Source: Trichosphaerium sp. ATCC 40318
Taxonomy: Eukaryota; Protista; Tubulinea
Assembly (NCBI GenBank): GCA_038496445.1
Contig: JALMLS010000516.1
Span: forward strand, 248,001 to 312,000
DNA: 64,000 nucleotides
Direction of reading: 5' to 3'
How positions within the stretch are numbered: position 1 is the first letter of the stretch; every line of letters begins with the position of its first letter. The notes under the pieces are model-generated. The model ran no database searches, was not told the origin of the DNA, and was given only the letters and a program-made list of their open reading frames with translations. The translations under genes were made by a program, and so were the position numbers. Below, in pieces: positions 453-62,801 of the stretch.

Positions 453-1361
453 ATGAGGCTAGATAACCGCGTAAAGATAGCATTATTGGGCGCTTTACTC
501 ATTTTTAGTTTAGTACGCATAAATAAAACCGTATTATACTGAAAATGCGTGTATGTTGTCTTCTTTCCACAAATCCGAGCGAATTATACATTTGAACCGC
601 TTCCAAACCATAAAACATTTAAAACCTTGAGCAGGTGGACACTAACATCCCCAACACTCTTTCTTACCTATTGAAACAGATATCTCACTTTTAACAGTCC
701 ACCTCGTGTTGCTATTGAACGACATGCAGTAAAGTTACCAAGTGGTGAAGTAGAACCAAATTGGCTCTGGGTACGCACTACTGAGCGAATAAAATGATAT
801 TGAAGGTCTTCTACATAGATTGTTACACCTCCTTACGTTAATGTCATGGCTGTTACGGAACAAGGAACAGTTTTAGTATTCAAACAAGAAAAATATGCAA
901 CAGGCACGTGATTATTTTTTTGTGTCATGGTTTAACCTCTTCTTACTTTGGATAAGATGGGGTTTCGTTGGCGGCCTGTGGAGGATATATTGATGAAGGA
1001 GAGACTCCATTAATGGCAGCTAAAAGAGAATTAATGGAAGAAACAGGGTACAAAGCCAAGGAATGGACCTTCCTTGGTACATATGCAAGTGATGCTAATC
1101 GTGGTACGCTAGCACTTTGTTGTTGAGTTCCTAAACACGACAGGATCTGGCACTGGTCATCTTTTCTTGGCTCAAGGCGCCTTCAAGGCAGACAAGAAAC
1201 TCGTACAAGCTGATGAAGAAAGTCAAGAATTGATGGAAATGACATTGAGCGAGCTTGAAGATGCCTTAGCTGAAAACGAGTTTAAAGTGACATCATGGTC
1301 GCTCACATATGCATTGGGTCAAGTACACATGAAGAGAAAGCAAAAACAAAGTAAAAAATAA
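453..1361 (+). CDS. Nudix hydrolase (ADP-ribose pyrophosphatase-like), multi-exon, possible N-terminal signal anchor
   Basis: Spliced translation gives the Nudix box GGYIDEGETPLMAAKRELMEETG (~980-1050). Needs GT-AG introns plus a GC-AG intron at 904-956. First exon MRLDNRVKIALLGALLIF is hydrophobic; the exon 1/2 junction is uncertain. Confidence 0.85.
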
Positions 1362-1607
1362 ACATCCTGTACGACCAAAGAGCTCGAGTAAGACTTGCCT
1401 TTCGATGACACGTGGAGATGTAACGAAGAGTCAAATATACAAATGTGACACCTTTGACGCCAGATTTGGTCGTCATAAAGTTTTTGACCGAGTTTGGGAG
1501 CACTAAAGCATAAAATGATAAGTTTAACATGCAATACGTAAAAATGTTTCATTTCGCTCAAGCACACTGCTGAGGGTGTTATTTACAAGTTGAGAGTGTT
1601 TTGCGGT

Positions 1608-1997
1608 CTAATGCATCTGTTGTGTTGCGCTTTGAAGCGCATTTAATCTTTCCATTATTTTAGCGAGAGTTTGGTTCACTTTGGCCATTCTCTTGCGTGC
1701 TGCTATAAGCTTGGCAACGTACGGCGCTAGAACAGGCACTTCAGAATACCCCATAAACTTTTCGAGTGCTAGTTACGTGTTAAACAGTATCATAATAGAG
1801 CAGTTTATCGTATTACCCGCAGATAACTGGTCAATCTGATCTGAAAGTTGTTGCTGGCTCATAAATACACCTTTAATACGATCATCGCATTCAGTGACCA
1901 CTGGTGTTAATAATTGCATTAGCCCATCGGCAAAAACTTCTTTGGTTGGTTTAGGGCCTTCTTCGCTCGCTTTTGAGTCGGTTGGAGCGTCAGACAT
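1608..1997 (-). CDS. Snapin / BLOC-1 subunit-like coiled-coil protein, 2 exons
   Basis: MSDAPTD...FADGLMQLLTPVVTECDDRIKGVFMSQQQLSDQIDQLSA / LEKF...LAPYVAKLIAARKRMAKVNQTLAKIMERL matches the Snapin/Pallidin pattern; one GT-AG intron. Confidence 0.75.
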
Positions 1998-2220
1998 TGT
2001 ATGTATCGTACCAGCGTTTCCAACTGTTAAATTCAAACTACGTCAAACGGAAATTTGAACTAGAATACACAGGGCGTTAACACGCAATAATAAACACCAA
2101 CTGGGCAAGTCTCGATCCTGTGGCGTACATTGCCACCTTTCCGTTTTGTTTTAGCTCAAACAACACGCACAAGAGATACGACAGCGCTACTTGACGTAAT
2201 TTAATAAAGCAAAACCGGAA

Positions 2221-5200
2221 ATGGAGTACCGTGATGGAAAAACCTCCCAAGGTACGCACTATCGATACTTGCACTTTTGGGGACCTACTATAGCGATTTT
2301 AAATTTTTTGAGCCATGCTTCCGTTTTCAGCCTTTCTTATGATCGTTCAACGCAATACATTTCTGACGCTAGCTCTATGCATCAACTCAATACGGCGTCG
2401 TTTGTTGTTAGGAGCTTTTGCTTTTTTTTTCAAAGTAACGTCAGTACAGCTATTAAAACCAATGTATAGGTAGTCCTGATAAGCCAGTACGCAAGAAATC
2501 TCAACAAAGTGAAACTTCTGGCAATACAAAGACGAAAAGGACGCAGAAAGGTTTCAATATTAAGCAAGGTAAGGCTACATTATGCTTTTTGGGCGAAAAC
2601 ATCGACAAAACAAAGTAGGAAAAAGCGTTATCAGTTTTTGTTCACCGTTTTACATTCCGCGCGTGCTACGTCAAGGCTAGCATACGCGTCTTAAATGTAA
2701 CCATCAAACGAAACAGTTTTTATTTACAAAAAACTTGTAGTTATCTCGTTGAAATCGCCTCGGTTCGGCAAGTCTAGCAAGAAGGATCCATTTCGGCCAA
2801 GGAAAAAGTCCAAAAAAGCTAAAACATCTAGAAAGACACGATCAGCCTCGTGGGTGTTTGGATCTGTTAGTAAGAAAAATGCACCATACACACATAGGGA
2901 TACAACGTCAAATGCACCAGGAAGACCAACGGGTGATCGTCAACGTCCAAGGACAAAGTCAACGAATTGGTCTGCTGGCACTAGCAACAATCGCTCGACT
3001 TTTGTTGATCCTATAGACCCTCAGAGTGATAGATATGATGAATTACGTTGTATGTTACAACGTGATGAGCTGCTGGGAATGCAATTTGCCCATGATGGAA
3101 GCAGTACGTAGGCCTTCATTAGGACTAACATTTTATTCCTTTTTATTTTTTTTTCTCCATTTTTGGAGGGAATTGGCACAAAGTTGTCTGGGCGATTTTT
3201 AGTCTGTATCGCCTTACTTTTTTGCGTGATTTCCTCTTTGTTAATTAAGGATAATTTTTAGTTAAAAATGGTAGCGGTAGCGAGAAGAGAAAAAAAGAAA
3301 AATCTCCACGTGCTGTAAGTCAGCCTGTTTATAAAATTGTACCAAGGATACAAAACATATCTCCTGCGCTTTCTGTGAATAGTACAAAGCAGTCTCCTAG
3401 CAGTACATTCACTTCAGGATCTATTAATGATCAATATGTCAGTGACGTTCGCACGTTCTCTGATTCTTCGTCTACATTTGAACAAACCCGGTCAACGTAT
3501 ACAACAGATGCAGATGGAGGCTTTGCAGATTACTATAATAGACCATTATCACCAATTACTACAGTTGATAGTAGTGATGATACATTTTCTGACTTTTCAG
3601 CTTCTATTGAAGAGCATCTCGGTGTCCATATCACAGTTGAGAGTCAAGGTACGTATATAGGTGTAAATCGTGTTTGCGTTAATTTTTTTTAAAGATGAAG
3701 GTTCAATAGGCCGTTCAGATCCAAAACCGTACAGTGTAGCAGCGTCTGTACCTAAAAAGTTTAAAGCAAAAATGCCTCGAACTGAGTGGGAGCCTTATAA
3801 TAGCAGCACGCACAGCGATATTGTTGTGCAAGGCAGTGAGTCTATTGGTAGTGATAGTCTCAGCGATAAAGTTGAAGGAACTACTTCTTCAGAGAGTATA
3901 AACAGTAGCCACGATGTACTCATGGAAACTGAACCAACTAACATTAAAAGTAGCGAAGTTGCCAATGATAATGATTCTGATTCGCGTACGTGGAACAAAC
4001 ACCAACACGAAGCAGTCCAACACAACTCACTGTTATTTTTCTAGAATTCGAGAAACCTGAAAGTGCAAGTGTTAGAGAGTTATTACAGTTTGCCAATAAC
4101 ATAGCTATGATAAGAAGAAATTCTGTACACTCTAAGGAAGAACAATTAAAGGTTCGAAGTAAAGAGAATCTATGTACGTCTAAAAAACATTCTCAAAAGT
4201 CTGACTTTTGTTTCTTTTTGCTAACATTGTCGACTTAGTTGCAGTGATTAAAAGAGAAGAAGGGTCATTCTCAAAACCTCATAAAGACCAACAACAAGAT
4301 AAATACACTGGTGGCATTTCTATTAAGCGTCATTCATTAAAAGTAGTTAAAGCTAGCTCTAGCGTTAGTAGAGTTCATATCAACAATGTTCTTGGAAGAA
4401 ATAACTCACAGAATCTACAAGCTGTTGTGTCATCAATAGCAGCAAAGGGAGGAAAAAATAATGCGACAAAACCTATTGTCAAACTAGATAAGATCCTTAT
4501 ACCAAGGATAAACTTTAACGCCGAAATGTCGACTGAAAGTTCATCAACGGAGAGCAGTAGCTCGGATTTAAATGACAGTGATATTGTTTCTGGTACTGCT
4601 TCATGGCATTCTACTTATAATGGTATTGGAGAAAAGTTAAATATTGGAAGCACATTTCAAAGTGCTTATGATCATAATATACCTAAATCACGTGTTATTG
4701 CTTCACAAAGTGCTATAACACTTCGTTGTAGTGATGAATCTTTTACATCATCTTTCTCTTCTACATCATCTTCTGATGATGCTATGAGTCTGGAGTATAT
4801 TGCTGGTAAGACTATTGCTTCTCTAAATGTAGCAAGGAAGCAAAAGAGAGGTATCTCCAATGATAAGTCAACGTTGCTTAGCGAAGAAGGTATGGCGGTG
4901 TTTTTTTTTCTTTTGTTTTTGATGTTCTTGTTAACAATGGTGTTCTTTTAGATGACTCTTCTCAATTTAGCAAGCCTAAACAAATGTTAATCACCCCTAC
5001 ATTAGATGTTATTCGAACTAAAGAGATACACGGTGGTACTTTCTCGTCAATTCAAAGTGGATCTGTATCACAACCTCTAAGTGAATCAACTATTTCATCT
5101 GACTATTCAACTGAAGATGAAGAGTTATCACTAGATGAGAGAGCACGTGCTCTTCAAAGTAGGCGCAGTATAGCTATGTCTTTAAAGATACAAAGAAAGT

Positions 5201-8200
5201 CACCAGGAAGTAAGAGAAGAATCGTATCACCAAATAATCAAAAAGGCAGAGGCTCTGTAAGTTCTTTCAATTCAGATACTGCATCTCGTAGTGTAATTGG
5301 CCAACCAAAAACGTTCAATATTAAACAACAACATCAAGAACAAGCTAATCATTATCAGTGTAAACCTACAGGTAGTGAAGTAACAGGAACGAAGGTGTCA
5401 AGAGTAAAAATGTCTCTTAAACCGAAAGAAAATAATAAGAAAAGAAAATGGGTTCATGGTATTGTATCAACAGTTTATGTTGAGGAGCCACCTGAGCGTG
5501 ATTTAACCTGGAACTTATCGTATGATCCCAGAAGATTTGCTAAATTGGATAATACCGGAGATAAAGAGCATATAAAGATTGCTCTTGGTATTGATAAAGC
5601 TGAAACTAAGAATGATGTTGAACAGGATTCAACTTCAACAAAAGAAGAAAAAAGTGAGATGAAGTATCCGCACACAACAAAGTCTCCAAGACCGTTGGGT
5701 AAACTTTTTTATAACACACAGAAACGACAAGGTAAGAACCATTCTCGAAACAAGAAAAATTCGTTGATTTTTTTTTACTTGTTTTTTTCTCTTCCTTTGT
5801 TGAGGTCTACGCTATTAGGAGTTTTTCTTCGTTTTCATAAATATATCTTCTAATACTCCATTGTCATTATTAGAATTTTCATGTCAGTAAAATCATTTTA
5901 TAGAGCCCTTAATTTAATTCCTCTTTTTTTTTTCCTTCATTGTTTATAATCGTTTTTTTTAGACAGTTTGAGTGTTCCTGAAAAACCTGACAATACAATG
6001 ATTTCAATAGACAGTATGTATTTTTATATAATAGTTTATTAGAGGCTTTGAACAGTAACCAAAAACAATAGGTGAAGGTGATAGGATTGATACTAAGCTT
6101 GAAGAGTATGATGATTTCACTGATTCTCAACCAACAAGTGGAAGGTTTCAATTAAGTCAAGTGAGCCTTCCTACTAGTATTGAAGGAACGTTTCAAATAG
6201 TTCCTACACTTAAAACACAACTATCACGAAGTAGTAAAAACTGTGATACTCCTGCTGCACCTACTGCAATGGAGGTTGAGATAAAGTCTGGATTGCCTTC
6301 TGAAAGAAGCTTAACACTAAGTTCTTATTCGGATAGCTTTGAACACCCTGATACTCCAAAAGAGGAGATTAAAAGTCAGAAAGATATTTCTTCTATAAGA
6401 GATAAACCTCTTGCTTTTGGGAAGTCTACAAGAGATAATAATATCTCACGAAGAATGAGTTTAGGGTGCGTTTTTCTGTTAAAAATAAGAAAAAGTTTGA
6501 GAAGATTATTTGCTTACGTTCTTGCTTAGTAGTGATATTGACAACTCTGATGGTGATGACAAGCGATACTCGGGGATTCAAAAGCGTGATAAAGGTATAT
6601 ATTTTTCTAGTTGAGTTTGTGGTGCAACGAGCACTCAATGGAAGATAAAAGCGTTAATTTTTTTTTTACTAGGATTATTACATGTTTGTATATCAAAAGC
6701 TAGAGGGCTTGTTGATGAAGATTTAAACGCATACTGTCTTGTAAAGTTTGGCCAGTATACTGTCAAGTCTTCTCCAGCATGTAGAGATTGGCAATTCTCA
6801 GTTCGTTTGCATGTGTTAGCTACATCTGATCCAAACGTTGAGGTACAGAATAATTTTTTTAAAAGTTTTGTTGACAATGTTTTGTAGATCCAAATATGGA
6901 GTACAGATACGGGATCAGATGATGTATTTATAGGCCAATATAAATTCAATATTGATGAGGTTATAAGTGATCGTAGAGAAGAGAATTGGTTTGCTCTTAG
7001 TGGTCCTGAAGGAGCCGAAGAAATAAGTGTTTATACAACTTTTGGTTGGCTTCCTAAAGAAGTAAGTTTTTGCCTTGTGATCATATGCATGGTTTAATAT
7101 ACTCTCTTAGGATCCAGAAATACGTAGTGGACTAACTCTGGCATCTTTACGGAACACATATGAACGCGAACTTGCGGAGATGGCATTGAATCTGAAAACG
7201 GATGATTTGAACTTGACTATTTATAACCGAGCTTCTGACGCAGAAGAAGAAAGTGATGTTTTCAATGAAATGTCGTCAAGTCCACCGCAGACAAGTGTAG
7301 AGAAACTTCAAGCCGGAATAAAACTTCTTTCCGTGAGTAGAACACCTTCAAGTCGGATATGGTATGCGAAGAAACAGATGTTTTTCTTTCTCATGATCAC
7401 GTGATTAATGCGTTTTTTTAGGAAGATGACGTCTCTTAATACTGATAATCAGATTAATGGAAATACAAAACAAATAAGTGTTTGTGGTGATTTCAAGTTA
7501 TTCGTACTTGACCACACTGTTGTGAAATTGAAGCATGACAACAAACTTCATAATGTTCGGTTTTTTTCTTCTTTTGCTTTTTTTGTCCCTCTGCTATGCA
7601 CTAAAAGGATGTGTTTTCTTATGTTTCCTGTTTAGATATTTAAAATACTTATAAAGAAGGATTCGTCATCTTGGTCAGTATACAGGAGATACTCTCAGTT
7701 TATAGAGCTACAAAAACAAGTGCGCATTTTGATCGATTATTGTTGTTGTAACCTTATTTCTTTAGTTGGTCAAGCGTTACAAGGGTATGTTTCCTTTAGC
7801 CAAGTTCAGTAAGCGTAGGATACATAACCTGAGTCCTCATAACGTTGATAAACGTCAACAGAAGCTTGAAAATTGGTATGTACCTCAGCGAATCTCCACG
7901 AACTCCTAGGTCCTAATTTCAGTTGTAGGTTAAGAAGTATTGTTAGTGTTGATGTAATTCTTAATGATCCGAATGTACAACACTTCTTTACACTCAACTG
8001 TGCCCAAGAACCAAAGTTAATAACTACAGAGCATGTTGGACATCTATACCGTATAATACCACGTAAGTACTTAAAGCCTGAAGTACGTAAGATATGGGTT
8101 GCTCTTAGAAATGGTGTTTTATTTAAATATAAAACAAAAAAAGAAAAACACCCGTACAGTATGACAGACTTGAAGAGAAGTACAATTCAACGTCTAGAAC

Positions 8201-8478
8201 AATCAGATAAGTCCGGATTATTACTAGGGCCAAAGTATAATACGCAAAGCGTATTCAGTATTGATATAAACGGTAAAAGTTATTATTATGCTGGATCTAA
8301 GCCAAGTACAATTGATAAGTGGCTTAAAGCTATTCAAAAGACTATGCCTCAAGTTAAAGGAAAGGTTCCTATGGATATATATGATGACTCAAGTGATGAT
8401 AAAGAAGATTCTTATAGTGATGATGGCTCTGGAGAATCACAATTCATAGGAAAAAGAAAAAGAGTCCTAATAGCATAA
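2221..8478 (+). CDS. Large protein: long Ser/Lys-rich disordered region followed by C2, PX and PH domains
   Basis: C2 (LLHVCISKARGLVDEDLNAYCLVKFG...IQIWSTDTGSDDVFIGQ, ~6670-7060), PX (IFKILIKKDSSSWSVYRRYSQFIELQKQ...ILNDPNVQHFF, ~7640-7990) and PH (VRKIWVALRNGVLFKYK...IDKWLKAIQK, ~8030-8340). Start codon and 5' exons are tentative. Confidence 0.7.
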
Positions 8479-59981: not shown

Positions 59982-61061
59982 AAAAGCGGAAGGTACATGG
60001 CCTTCTCTGACATTTAGTTTGGCAGCCACTTTCTCAGCTGTTTTCATACTTATTTTACCTTTACAACAGTTGGTTAAGTAATTTTTGGTAAAAGATTTTT
60101 ACGCACCTATGCCATCAGAGAATACATATTCTGCTACTAGTTCTTCCAGTTTACCTGCAAAAACCTTCCGTCGGAATTCAGAAGGAGACATGGGCACTCG
60201 CTCAACTATTGTAATATCGTCAATGTACTTGACACCATCTTCAGATAGAACAATAGTATCATTGGTTCCTGAAAAGCACTGACCCATCCTAATATATTTC
60301 AAAAAAGAGGATAAGATGTGGTAGATGATTGAAACCTGTTTTTTGAAGAAGTAACGTTACACGTGATGTTCTTACCTTGCAGCATATTTTCCTACGATTT
60401 TAATATTCTCGAAATTACCCATTGCCTTTCTTATTTTGGCGGATGTTAATCCTCCAGTTGGTGCAAACATCCATAACGAACTTTCTCGAAGTTGCGAAGA
60501 AGAAAACGCTAAAAAGTCATAGTGTCTTCCACAAATATCCATCCCTGTTACGTGTTACTTGATGTCCTGGTACTTGTACTAGCACAAACCTTGTTTAAGG
60601 CATTCGCGAAAAGTAACGTCCATCTCATTATTATCTAATAAGGGTAAGCGTAAGTAATTAGGCTGTTTTCCGTACTGAGATCACGAGGATTTAGCTTGCC
60701 AAAATCATCTAAACACAGTAAGATAGGACAATTAACAACTATATACCATCAGCAAATGATACCCGAAGAAAGTAGTCTTCATGTTCTTTATATTGTCTCA
60801 ATATCCTATTTGACTGCTCCCACACTGGACCAACAAGATACGTTTTGAAGTGAGTAACAATCACTCTATAAAATACTAAATAAGTCTCAACATTTTTTTG
60901 TTCACTTATTTACCTGAATGTCAAGCACATATTAGGAACTTCTTCAGGAAACGGCTCAAACTCTTCCATCAACCATAAATCAAGCTCGTTTGTTGGATCA
61001 CTGTAACAACCTTCTTCCCGCCACATTTCCTCCAAAGCATTTAGCACGTGCTTTTCGTTAC

Positions 61062-61138
61062 TGTCGCGTACTAACCACTACGCTATACAAAACGTATTAA
61101 CACACTCACTCTGGAGTATGGTGGAACCTTATACGACA
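61062..61138 (-). repeat. 3' LTR of the TRIM
   Basis: Exact direct repeat of 61305-61381. Confidence 0.95.
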
Positions 61139-61273
61139 TACTCCCCTCCTTAAACAAGAGGTCGCCCTCGACCGTTCCGTGCCGGGGTCTCTTTGCTAAG
61201 TCAGGGAGAAGGTATTACCGCACAGTACAATCGTGCACACACCCGTAGGTATAATTCAAATCGGGCCGATCCG

Positions 61274-61328
61274 GGGATCGAACCCACAGCATCGTGTCGC
61301 CATATGTCGCGTACTAACCACTACGCTA
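61274..61328 (-). promoter_or_regulatory. tRNA-type Pol III internal promoter: A box in the LTR, B box in the internal region
   Basis: Minus strand: A box TAGCGTAGTGG (61328-61318) with D-arm GCGT/ACGC; B box GGTTCGATCCC (61284-61274); 33-nt spacing. Confidence 0.75.
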
Positions 61329-61381
61329 TACAAAACGTATTAACACACTCACTCTGGAGTATGGTGGAACCTTATACGACA
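61305..61381 (-). repeat. 5' LTR of the TRIM
   Basis: Exact direct repeat of 61062-61138; followed on the minus strand by TA and the PBS. Confidence 0.95.
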
Positions 61382-62801
61382 TTACCCCTAAGTAAAAATG
61401 AGGAGAACTTTTACAAAAAAGTCCATGCTTTTCGATTTCCTTGCGTATCATGGTTATGAATTTTTGATCAGTTGTCCTCAGGTTTACATTACCCCAAGAG
61501 TTTAGCTTCTGTATAGCAAATTGTACTCTAAAGGGAAGGTCATCAAATTTTACACGTGGCCAACTTTTAATAGGTTCAATAATTATTTTATGTTTGAGTT
61601 GCTGGACTCTGAGTTGTTTGCGTATTTTCTCCATGGTCTCACCAAATAACGCGCTTCTTGAGCCATTCGCGATATTGCCATCTGTACTTCCAGACAAGGT
61701 TGCCTTAAAACAATAAACTAGCTCACCACTCAGAACCTTGCCGAACTTTTTCTTGAAATAGGTTGCTCCAAATCTAGCTTCTTCTCCAACTGATCAGAAT
61801 TTGCTTCTTTTTCTCCAATGAATTTTGGAGGGTGCTTCACATGTAGAAGTATATTGAATGCGTAACGTGACACTTCGTAAAATTCTACAAGATATGCTTG
61901 AGCGTATCCTATTTCGCACGTGATTTTCATTGTTTTGTTTTTGTAGCTGATATTTGACTTCAAAAACTGTAGAATACTGTTCGATTTGTTCTGGATTTCT
62001 CCACTCCATAGCTCAAAATCAGGGGAATAACTTCCGCTCTTCGTCATACTACCAATGTAAAACGACGTTACAGAGAATACTAGACTCTTTTTGTTTCTTC
62101 CAGCGTCCGCTATGGCGATTGGTTTGTAGTTCTTGGCTTTATTGGAACGCTTAAAATATATCTTGACAATTTGTTAGCGTAATCAATAGAGATCATAGCA
62201 ACGCACCTCACGTCCCATGAAAGATGCTCTTCCCAGAAGCACCAATAAGTGGCTATTTTTTATAGTAGCGAAGGCGAAGCACTTTCTCCTGAGCGGAGAA
62301 ATTATCAGAAAATGCTCTCAGAGATAGTTTTGGAAAGTGTAGGTACTTGCGTTTAAAAACGCTGGAGAATTCCAGAAAAATTATGTAACGTACCCTTTCA
62401 TAATCTTTTTCACTTTAACTACTGTTACGCCTTTGGTTTCTAAAAACGTCTTTAACGACGCGGGCGTCGCCTGTTTAAGGGGGTAAGAACGCAATGTACT
62501 AAACTTTGAGTACGTTATAAGGCACGTTACCAATGTAAACTTCAAAAGCTTCCATTTGATGAACCCTAATATGTAACGTATTTTAATGCTTAGAAAGAAC
62601 GAGTGGCTTTGCGAACTGCCTTTTACACAAGGAGTCAACTCCAGTAAACTGCATGACATTAATGCACGTGCGAGATAGTTATTGTAGGTTTTACCACGTG
62701 ATAAAAATGGTTGCTTGTGTATAGCTTGTAGATTGATAGTTAATCCGTAACTCTTTATTTACAATCAAACTAGTTGGTTCTTCACTTAGATATTTTAAAT
62801 A

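Follow-up and report, generated by a model that had tools for sequence, protein, structure and literature searches.

The 64,000-nt stretch of DNA analysed here (the window) contains an RdRP gene region, a gene for an LRR protein that resembles giant-virus LRR proteins, and a TRIM that lies in sense orientation within the RdRP gene region. The resemblance of the LRR protein is compatible with an amoeba as the source, though not proof of it. The TRIM is 320 bp long, occupies positions 61062–61381 on the minus strand, and was confirmed there with the anatomy listed below. It consists of TG..CA direct repeats around a short non-coding interior, is below 1 kb in total, includes a primer-binding site (PBS) as well as a polypurine tract (PPT), shows signs of transposition, and has no open reading frame of its own. 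Its features, in window coordinates, are:

61058–61061, no strand: target-site duplication, copy beside the 3′ LTR; TTAC on the plus strand, GTAA on the element strand; recurs at 61382–61385
61062–61138, minus: 3′ LTR, 77 bp, TGTCG..CGACA; T4 at 61089–61092 and A-box copy at 61075–61085; no B box after it
61089–61336, minus: unit-length RNA of about 248 nt predicted under the Pol III model from the geometry, starting at 5′ LTR position 46 and ending in the T4 of the 3′ LTR
61139–61304, minus: non-coding interior, 166 bp, 55% G+C, without T4 on the element strand
61141–61151, minus: polypurine tract AAGGAGGGGAG, 2 nt before the 3′ LTR and followed by TA and that LTR
61274–61284, minus: B-box/T-loop motif GGTTCGATCCC, element positions 98–108
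61292–61302, minus: PBS TGGCGACACGA, complementary to the last 11 nt of host tRNA-Ser(AGA/UGA) including CCA; occupies the anticodon-arm place of the tRNA-like module
61305–61381, minus: 5′ LTR, 77 bp, with the same sequence as the 3′ LTR
61318–61328, minus: A-box/D-arm motif TAGCGTAGTGG, LTR positions 54–64, with the D stem GCGT/ACGC intact
61332–61335, minus: T4 run, LTR positions 47–50 (tRNA positions 1–4), proposed as Pol III terminator and R region
61370–61376, minus: TATA-like motif TATAAGG, LTR positions 6–12, in the most conserved part of the LTR
61382–61385, no strand: target-site duplication, copy beside the 5′ LTR, the same 4 nt as 61058–61061

The exact direct repeats, at 61062–61139 and 61305–61382, are 100% identical over 78 nt, one more than the LTR itself because one interior T matches by chance. 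The LTR length of 77 bp (TGTCG..CGACA, with TGTCGTAT as its first letters) was set with the help of the TTAC duplication, and both agree with the original prediction. On the element strand, a 2-nt spacer, TA, separates the 5′ LTR from the PBS. As a motif, TATAAGG could serve Pol II or TFIIIB, or form part of the end recognised by integrase.

A check of the genome for copies bore out the prediction of a mobile family. The genome holds two full copies at separate loci, which differ at two positions, both in the interior; the second is flanked on both sides by an ATGG duplication. About 40 solo LTRs are also present, many of them 100% identical, and perfect 4-bp duplications flank 16 of the 20 young ones. 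All solo LTRs end at the same CA, inside the tRNA-like module described below, and the interior beyond its first 30 nt occurs, genome-wide, only in the two full copies. The TRIM is real and was active recently. In an older LTR subfamily that is 80–85% identical, the A-box consensus TGGCGTAGTGG is kept, and so, in the consensus, is the T4 directly upstream of it. The expectation that the A box, B box and T4 would be conserved among copies was borne out for the A box and T4; for the B box, conservation is known from the two near-identical full copies (2 nt apart) and one truncated relative. Targeting of tRNA genes was considered and rejected: up to a distance of 1.5 kb, none of 38 LTR loci has a credible tRNA gene nearby, and ARAGORN made a single call there, a questionable tRNA-Cys whose intron would measure 373 nt.

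As had been anticipated, the PBS finds its match at the 3′ end of a host tRNA, but over 11 nt, one more than originally noted; six host tRNA-Ser(AGA/UGA) genes have a 3′ end that, with CCA added, is complementary to it. No host RNA matched the 25 nt that follow its TGG at up to three mismatches, and the PBS is therefore confined to the first 11 nt.

The part of the element that starts at LTR position 47, spans the PBS and reaches the T-arm motif aligns collinearly and without gaps to host tRNA-Thr(UGU). Identity is concentrated in the box positions (20/23, against 21/50 for the rest; Fisher p = 3e-4): all invariant A-box and B-box positions are kept, the loop consensus is matched perfectly (AGTGG and GGTTCGANNCC), and the stems and anticodon arm are at chance-level identity. 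The two boxes are separated by 33 nt, the figure given in the original prediction, and by 44 nt from start to start, which equals the canonical distance from tRNA position 8 to position 52. Positions 1–25 of the module, its 5′ third with the A box, are the portion inside the LTR; the B box, in the interior, lies within 16 nt that recur unchanged in the T arm of host tRNA-Arg(CCU). As had been proposed, a B box follows the 5′ LTR only, and the 3′ LTR and solo LTRs carry the A box alone. A genome-wide search with the A-box..B-box pattern returned just the two TRIM copies and no further family with this split architecture in the genome, and the reversed control gave 0 matches.

The module is not a functional tRNA gene: acceptor pairing is absent and 3 of 5 T-stem pairs form. 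ARAGORN found no tRNA at the junction, and neither the Rfam tRNA model (RF00005) nor an Rfam 5S search gave a match at E values up to 10. Judged by its sequence, the junction carries a genuine tRNA-derived module in which only the A- and B-box regions are conserved. Folding added little: the whole putative RNA is weakly better than shuffles (z = −1.67) and the module is no better (z = −0.48), and these values therefore give no support for a stable special fold. In the predicted local fold, LTR positions 53–59, at the start of the A box, pair with the last 2 nt of the PBS and the 5 nt after them, so that the pairing encloses most of the PBS. The result is a U5-leader stem of the kind that other retroelements form around the PBS, and it could account for some of the conservation with no promoter involved.

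On the element strand, T4 runs occur only at element positions 47 and 290, in agreement with the original prediction. The significance that it attached to a T4-free interior did not hold: 67% of same-composition shuffles of the interior, and 47% of those of the whole putative transcript, also lack T4, and the T4-free interior is statistically insignificant. Host tRNA loci provide a reference for the geometry. In 16 of 36 loci CAA directly adjoins position +1, a hint of very short leaders. Most loci use T5 or longer (T5 in 17 of 36, T4 in 7), and of the 30 loci with a run of at least four T within 60 nt, 7 have T4 as their first T run. Since T5 is the commoner signal, T4 may be a weak terminator. 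In the TRIM, T4 lies at the expected start or a few nucleotides downstream of it, and the R region would therefore measure 5–7 nt at most, to our knowledge far below any documented length (18 nt in Cassandra). Pol III would need to read through the T4 of the 5′ LTR yet stop at the T4 of the 3′ LTR.

A second family, with a 192-bp LTR, is related to the TRIM. It shares the first 8 nt of the TRIM LTR, the same PBS and 17 further nucleotides including the B box, and its A box, again 44 nt away, is degenerate. Its LTR contains TATA-like and AATAAA motifs and no T4, and looks like a Pol II design. One match to this family (C117) was considered as an autonomous partner and rejected, being a truncated 222-bp insertion made of the 192-bp LTR plus 30 nt; this truncated relative may be a recombinant.

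The autonomous Gypsy element with the same termini that had been anticipated was not found. Among 43 LTR candidates there was no LTR pair around a coding interior, and the TRIM LTR is therefore not shared with an autonomous element. One candidate pair (C563) proved to be a segmental duplication of LRR/ankyrin genes containing a solo LTR. A Ty3/Gypsy element (C130/C1, L102) encoding PR-RT-RNase H-IN carries a PBS for tRNA-Ser, is flanked by a 4-bp duplication and resembles the TRIM in the style of its PPT; as a same-LTR partner it was rejected, the LTR ends sharing only TGT..ACA. The pattern ACA-N(1-6)-TGGCGACACGA marks 20 further tRNA-Ser PBS sites in the genome. Two metagenome matches, both in G+C-rich contigs, were dismissed as chance, and no relatives of the TRIM were found in viral contigs.

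The explanation that we favour, with slightly better than even confidence, is a tRNA-Ser-primed TRIM transcribed by Pol III from a type-2 promoter split over the 5′ LTR/PBS junction; Pol III transcription, its start site, its terminator and the partner element are what we infer here. The most likely source of the RNA would be a type-2 promoter (of the tRNA-gene type) that stems from a tRNA-Thr-like sequence. In this promoter the D arm with the A box would be supplied by the final 24 nt of the LTR (U5), the anticodon arm would be replaced by the LTR terminus, 2-nt spacer and PBS, and the T arm with the B box would sit just inside the interior. Because the PBS starts where the LTR stops, a B box adjoins the 5′ LTR alone. 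Transcripts would end at the T4 (tRNA positions 1–4) of the 3′ LTR, near the start point in the 5′ LTR, yielding a unit-length RNA (about 248 nt) whose R region is very short; a leaky T4 would give a longer R of about 32 nt. A Ty3/Gypsy-type element probably mobilised the TRIM in trans. A simple origin can be envisaged from a Helenus-like element, in which the PBS moved into the tRNA-like module and the LTR was thereby redefined and shortened. The narrower proposal, in which the Pol III promoter is confined to the point of contact between 5′ LTR and interior and T4 doubles as terminator and minimal R region, is tentative, falling a little short of an even chance.

The placement of T4, awkward for a Pol III start, also suits a different account, in which this is an ordinary TRIM transcribed by Pol II or by read-through and the D-arm and T-arm motifs represent the remains of captured tRNA- or SINE-derived sequence without a present promoter role. 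Such an account is unlikely in our view, and it has concrete observations behind it: TATAAGG lies in the most conserved part of the LTR, the lack of T4 in the interior is insignificant against shuffles, and the 192-bp LTR, with its TATA-like motif, AATAAA, degenerate A box and absence of T4, nevertheless has the PBS and B-box block in common with the TRIM. The window copy is also sense-oriented in the RdRP gene region, and host read-through RNA is therefore possible. A neutral relic, however, should not retain the invariant box positions and the exact 44-nt spacing while its stems and anticodon arm decay, nor is it expected to preserve the A box and adjacent T4 in a subfamily 15–20% diverged; moreover, a 77-bp LTR without AATAAA leaves little room for a Pol II U3, R and U5.

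The conservation could alternatively reflect reverse transcription or packaging, with the tRNA-like flanks of the PBS folding into a U5-leader stem plus hairpins by which the PBS is offered to tRNA-Ser, or acting as a tRNA mimic for the Gag or RT of a partner. The enclosing fold described above fits this idea, as do the two hairpin-forming motifs that flank the PBS, the leader block that is 100% identical in the element with the different LTR, and the similar 6-bp stem that the U5 of that element can form by hand pairing. We nonetheless consider it improbable: the local fold does not exceed shuffles in stability, the motifs and the arms of the primer tRNA are of one sense so that pairing between them is impossible, and a structural role leaves the AGTGG and GGTTCGANNCC loop-consensus matches and the tRNA-like spacing unexplained. 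That the resemblance is due to chance, or that the feature is mis-delimited (for example, a tRNA gene interrupted by an insertion), is very improbable. The failure of ARAGORN and of the Rfam tRNA model to detect a tRNA would agree with it, but the same junction occurs at two unrelated loci with different duplications, copies that refute it; in addition, every solo LTR stops at the same CA within the tRNA-like module, and the control for the A..B pattern matches nowhere in the genome. Overall, the earlier interpretation is partly supported, and the split type-2 promoter is the reading that we retain.

LTR retrotransposons normally hold the entire promoter in the LTR, and every LTR, including 3′ and solo LTRs, is therefore a potential promoter. 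The few Pol III-driven TRIMs known to us (Cassandra, Helenus and Ajax) all keep the whole promoter in the LTR. A split promoter, if true, would be active in intact elements only, leaving 3′ and solo LTRs silent, and would permit an extremely short LTR, 77 bp then being the shortest known functional one. It would also mean that LTR boundaries can shift inside a promoter module when the PBS moves, and it would add an amoeboid protist to the range of TRIMp3 elements. The TRIM is, moreover, a test case for the minimal R length in first-strand transfer and for whether Pol III disregards a promoter-proximal T run, as happens with the 5′ poly(A) signals of retroviruses. If one of the alternatives is right, this would be a small TRIM family with a tRNA-derived relic, and still the first record of this type of element in this protist group.

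In the literature searched, we found no described family with A and B boxes split between LTR and interior, in line with the novelty that the original prediction had assumed. The closest known system is Helenus (TRIMp3), for which Kojima (2024, Biology 13:119, PMC10886601) gives lengths of 311–1263 bp and hosts among fungi, animals and Selaginella. According to the same article, several fungal Helenus families are tRNA-Thr-like, animal Helenus elements make 4-bp duplications, and conserved boxes with decayed stems are the pattern of SINE heads and Helenus LTRs (PMC10886601). It also presents Pol III transcription of Helenus as inferred from sequence only, as it is for the TRIM described here, and states the expectation that Pol III-driven TRIMs share no LTR with an autonomous element (PMC10886601). 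Like Helenus, the present element is a short non-autonomous LTR retrotransposon with PBS, PPT and solo LTRs, and its tRNA-derived sequence conserves mainly boxes A and B and forms no working tRNA. Unlike Helenus, in which both boxes lie within each LTR, it has the A-box third in the LTR and the B box in the interior, with the putative promoter at the 5′ LTR only. Its LTR measures 77 bp, compared with 120 bp in Helenus-1_SMo, one short Helenus LTR, and the reported hosts of Helenus do not include amoeboid protists.

Cassandra, as characterised in that article, has an LTR that contains both the promoter and the terminator for Pol III; its transcripts begin in the 5′ LTR and finish in the 3′ LTR, which gives an 18-nt terminal duplication (PMC10886601). 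The TRIM shares this arrangement of start and end, here predicted. It differs in that the Cassandra promoter is of type 1 (5S) and lies wholly in the LTR, whereas the present TRIM has no 5S match; in its predicted R region of at most 5–7 nt, against the 18 nt given there for Cassandra; and in that Cassandra elements are 565–860 bp long and their transcription was demonstrated experimentally, whereas here it is predicted.

Canonical TRIMs (TRIMp2 in Kojima's terms, including plant TRIMs and PbTRIM of ants) have in common with this element short LTRs, a PBS and PPT, a non-coding interior, duplicated target sites, numerous solo LTRs and reliance on an autonomous element, but they have no promoter motifs derived from small-RNA genes, and their LTRs are usually 100–250 bp. 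With tRNA-derived SINEs (SINE2), the TRIM shares a tRNA head whose A and B boxes survive as the stems decay, and a Pol III unit, here putative, of a few hundred nucleotides ending in a T run. SINEs, however, are without LTRs, PBS and PPT and are LINE-mobilised by target-primed reverse transcription; they have variable duplications and A-rich or LINE-like tails, in contrast to the fixed 4-bp duplication and integrase-type TG..CA ends of the element described here.

The element is a 320-bp miniature LTR retrotransposon (TRIM) at window positions 61062-61381, with the minus strand as its own strand. An exact direct repeat on the plus strand (61062-61139 and 61305-61382) delimits it; once the TTAC target-site duplication is taken into account, the terminal repeat is 77 bp long (TGTCG..CGACA), and the 78th matching base is a coincidence. 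Repeats, duplication, the primer-binding site (PBS) and the polypurine tract (PPT) all read as the original prediction had described them.

Features of the TRIM, in element order
61382-61385 and 61058-61061: target-site duplication TTAC
61305-61381, minus strand: 5' LTR
between 5' LTR and PBS, minus strand: spacer TA
61292-61302, minus strand: PBS TGGCGACACGA
between the LTRs, minus strand: interior, 166 bp
61141-61151, minus strand: PPT AAGGAGGGGAG, then TA
61062-61138, minus strand: 3' LTR

The motif TATAAGG at LTR positions 6-12, within the most conserved part of the LTR, could be a Pol II element, a TFIIIB element or a piece of the integrase recognition end. The TRIM lies in sense orientation inside or adjoining exon fragments of a gene for a cellular RNA-dependent RNA polymerase, RdRP (60099-61700, minus strand; Pfam RdRP PF05183 at 60099-60542), and an ORF at 61386-61697 continues open into the 5' LTR. 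Elsewhere, the window encodes an LRR protein similar to giant-virus LRR proteins.

Searched in full (70.3 Mb, 642 contigs), the assembly contains the 320-bp element twice at full length, in the window and on another contig (C9:251744-252063), and has about 40 further matches to the LTR only. The C9 copy has its own duplication, ATGG, and differs from the window copy at two interior positions, 131 and 201, which lie outside every motif. Solo LTRs at unrelated loci account for the LTR-only matches; many have 100% identity to the full-copy LTR, and a perfect 4-bp duplication surrounds 16 of 20 young-subfamily solo LTRs. Both the anatomy of the TRIM and the mobility of its family are established. 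The LTR:interior ratio of about 22:1 is unusually high, despite many solo LTRs (loci L003-L030) identical to the active LTR; it reflects either very fast recombination between 77-bp repeats 243 bp apart or direct integration of single-LTR DNA. Among all LTR matches in the assembly, no coding interior was found between any two. A pair of LTRs on contig C563 was rejected as an element, since LRR and ankyrin repeat genes are segmentally duplicated there together with a solo LTR (locus L037, C563:3000-12999; copies about 6.8 kb apart, each with LRR and ankyrin repeat arrays and one old solo LTR). Because no credible tRNA gene lies within 1.5 kb of the LTR at any of 38 LTR loci, insertion of the family is not targeted to tRNA genes.

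A primer search pattern in which a T loop precedes the PBS complement recovered six tRNA-Ser(AGA/UGA) genes. The 11 nt of TGGCGACACGA, one more than in the original prediction, are complementary to the 3' end plus CCA of all six, and pairing ends there; no host sequence for the 25 nt beyond the PBS TGG was found at up to 3 mismatches. A primer tRNA ending in ..CGUGUCGCCA had been predicted, and these six genes supply it, demonstrating the match between the TRIM PBS and a tRNA-Ser primer. ACA followed by 1-6 nt and TGGCGACACGA occurs at 27 genome sites, whereas the reversed control gives 2; LTR retrotransposons of this genome therefore appear usually to be primed by tRNA-Ser, in several families with 1-nt or 2-nt spacers. 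At two loci, L091 (C12:203210-203830) and L090 (C496:7010-7630), tRNA-Ser 3' fragments with an encoded CCA are followed by AATAT...; on the opposite strand each reads as an LTR-like end, then a PBS, then at least 40 nt of copied primer tRNA. Both look like relics of plus-strand strong-stop synthesis reading through the primer.

The A-box consensus TRGCNNAGTGG is matched exactly at LTR positions 54-64 on the element strand and the B-box consensus GGTTCGANNCC at element positions 98-108, 33 nt after the A box, just as predicted for an A box in the LTR and a B box inside. Across the genome, no sequence but the two TRIM copies has this arrangement (reversed control, 0). Around the B box, 16 nt match the T arm of host tRNA-Arg(CCU) perfectly, and the best overall match among 36 host tRNA loci is tRNA-Thr(UGU). 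MAFFT alignment of the latter with the LTR from position 47 onward is gapless, placing a run of four T (T4) on tRNA positions 1-4, the D arm on 8-25 and the T arm on 49-65, with LTR end, spacer and PBS filling exactly the 21 nt that separate the two arms. Identity to tRNA-Thr(UGU) is 20/23 in the box regions and 21/50 elsewhere (Fisher p = 3e-4, the reference tRNA having been picked as best match), and the three box-region mismatches all fall at degenerate positions. Acceptor pairing is lost and 3 of 5 T-stem pairs are left; ARAGORN found no tRNA in the window, and the Rfam tRNA model did not match the TRIM region even at E = 10. Rather than a tRNA, the junction is a tRNA-derived module that has kept only its promoter boxes; its tRNA origin is clear. 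Boxes-only survival is also found in SINE heads and in the LTRs of Helenus, a named TRIM family (PMC10886601). No special fold was detected for the whole RNA (z = -1.67) or the tRNA-like module (z = -0.48), and the folds lend no support to Pol III transcription. Locally, a 7-bp U5-leader stem is predicted around the PBS and could account for part of the conservation.

An older LTR subfamily (80-85% identical, at least eight solo copies) reads ..CGCTTTTGGCGTAGTGG.. at the homologous place. It retains two of the features whose conservation was to be checked: the A-box consensus as TGGCGTAGTGG, and the T4, which there overlaps the A box at its first base. The third relative, a family of 192-bp LTRs, is represented by old solo copies with 80-95% mutual identity, which share their first 8 nt (TGTCGTAT) with the TRIM LTR and end in ..CATAACA. 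These LTRs have TATA-like and AATAAA motifs, no T4, and in U5 a degenerate A box (TAGCACTGCAGG) lying 44 nt from the B box, start to start, as in the TRIM. In the copy on contig C117 (L036 4823-5044, minus strand), the LTR is followed by TC and then by 28 nt identical to the TRIM, comprising the PBS and 17 nt with the B box; this block stops abruptly at GATCC, and only a 3-bp AAT repeat flanks the copy. The insertion, defined as 222 bp by a paralogous empty site on contig C155 (L039), probably reflects either aberrant or truncated integration or recombination of two element families. The PBS/B-box block could have been kept by selection, or C117 could be a recombinant with a TRIM interior.

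The best-supported reading, to which we give a little better than an even chance, is a TRIM driven by Pol III (in Kojima's classification, TRIMp3), with a type-2 promoter split by the LTR/PBS boundary. Since two bases separate the LTR end from the PBS and the PBS falls between the boxes, the A box would belong to U5 and the B box to the interior, an arrangement that may have arisen when the PBS of a Helenus-like ancestor shifted into the tRNA-like module. In type-2 promoters the B box is the main TFIIIC anchor; because it is present only beside the 5' LTR, activity would be restricted to that LTR, leaving 3' LTRs and solo LTRs silent. Transcription would start at LTR positions 44-46, just before the T4 at 47-50, the equivalent of the host tRNA start. 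In the host, 16 of the 36 tRNA loci have CAA directly before position +1, which suggests very short leaders for host tRNA genes. With termination at the T4 of the 3' LTR, the RNA would measure about 248 nt and its R region at most 5-7 nt. The original interpretation stands for anatomy, mobility, primer match and the tRNA origin of the split module; Pol III transcription, its start, its terminator and the tiny R region we infer.

Several points weigh against this model. Pol III would need to ignore a T4 within its first 7 nt in the 5' LTR but terminate at that T4 in the 3' LTR, and an R of 5 nt would be far shorter than the 18 nt that PMC10886601 gives for the TRIM family Cassandra. At most of the 36 host tRNA loci the first T run is longer: it is T5 at 17 and at least T6 at 6, with T4 coming first at 7, all six tRNA-Ser genes among them. 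Were T4 leaky, termination would shift to flanking T runs, making R span LTR positions 46-77 (about 32 nt); this would ease strand transfer, but T4 would no longer be the terminator. The T4-free interior, originally offered as evidence for the Pol III model, carries no weight: T4 is absent from 67% of same-composition shuffles of the interior and from 47% of those of the complete putative transcript.

Among the host tRNA loci, the motif GCTTTTTGG lies about 45 nt upstream of many genes (loci L053-L093). Six tRNA-Lys(UUU) copies, which have a downstream tail in common and no T run of at least 4 within 60 nt, look like heads of a tRNA-Lys-derived SINE; if so, this would explain 3648 tRNA-like first-look candidates.

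The search for an autonomous Gypsy partner led to a Ty3/Gypsy element with protease, RT, RNase H and integrase on contig C130 (L102, ~1335-8302), present also at L103 (C1). The C130 element is bounded by 140-bp LTRs and a GTAC duplication; its 23-nt PBS fits another tRNA-Ser, and its PPT is of TRIM-like style (..AAGAGGGAG plus 3 nt, then TGT). An in-frame stop interrupts the integrase core between ORFs 4993-6828 and 6829-8043. The primer tRNA type and the duplication length are those of the TRIM, but the LTR termini differ beyond TGT..ACA.

No TRIM relatives were found in metagenome or viral contigs, two metagenome-contig matches having been rejected as chance matches. Full-text literature searched with TRIMp3 and TRIM plus Pol III box terms yielded no published element with boxes split between LTR and interior, nor any from amoeboid protists. 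The split-box architecture is new and testable, but the family is small. Kojima (2024) described Helenus, reported from fungi, animals and Selaginella, as TRIMs with tRNA-derived LTR sequence in which boxes A and B both lie in the LTR, and grouped it with Cassandra and Ajax as TRIMp3 (PMC10886601). The window TRIM is proposed to work like Helenus but differs in carrying box B outside the LTR, and for this reason we do not count it as a Helenus element.
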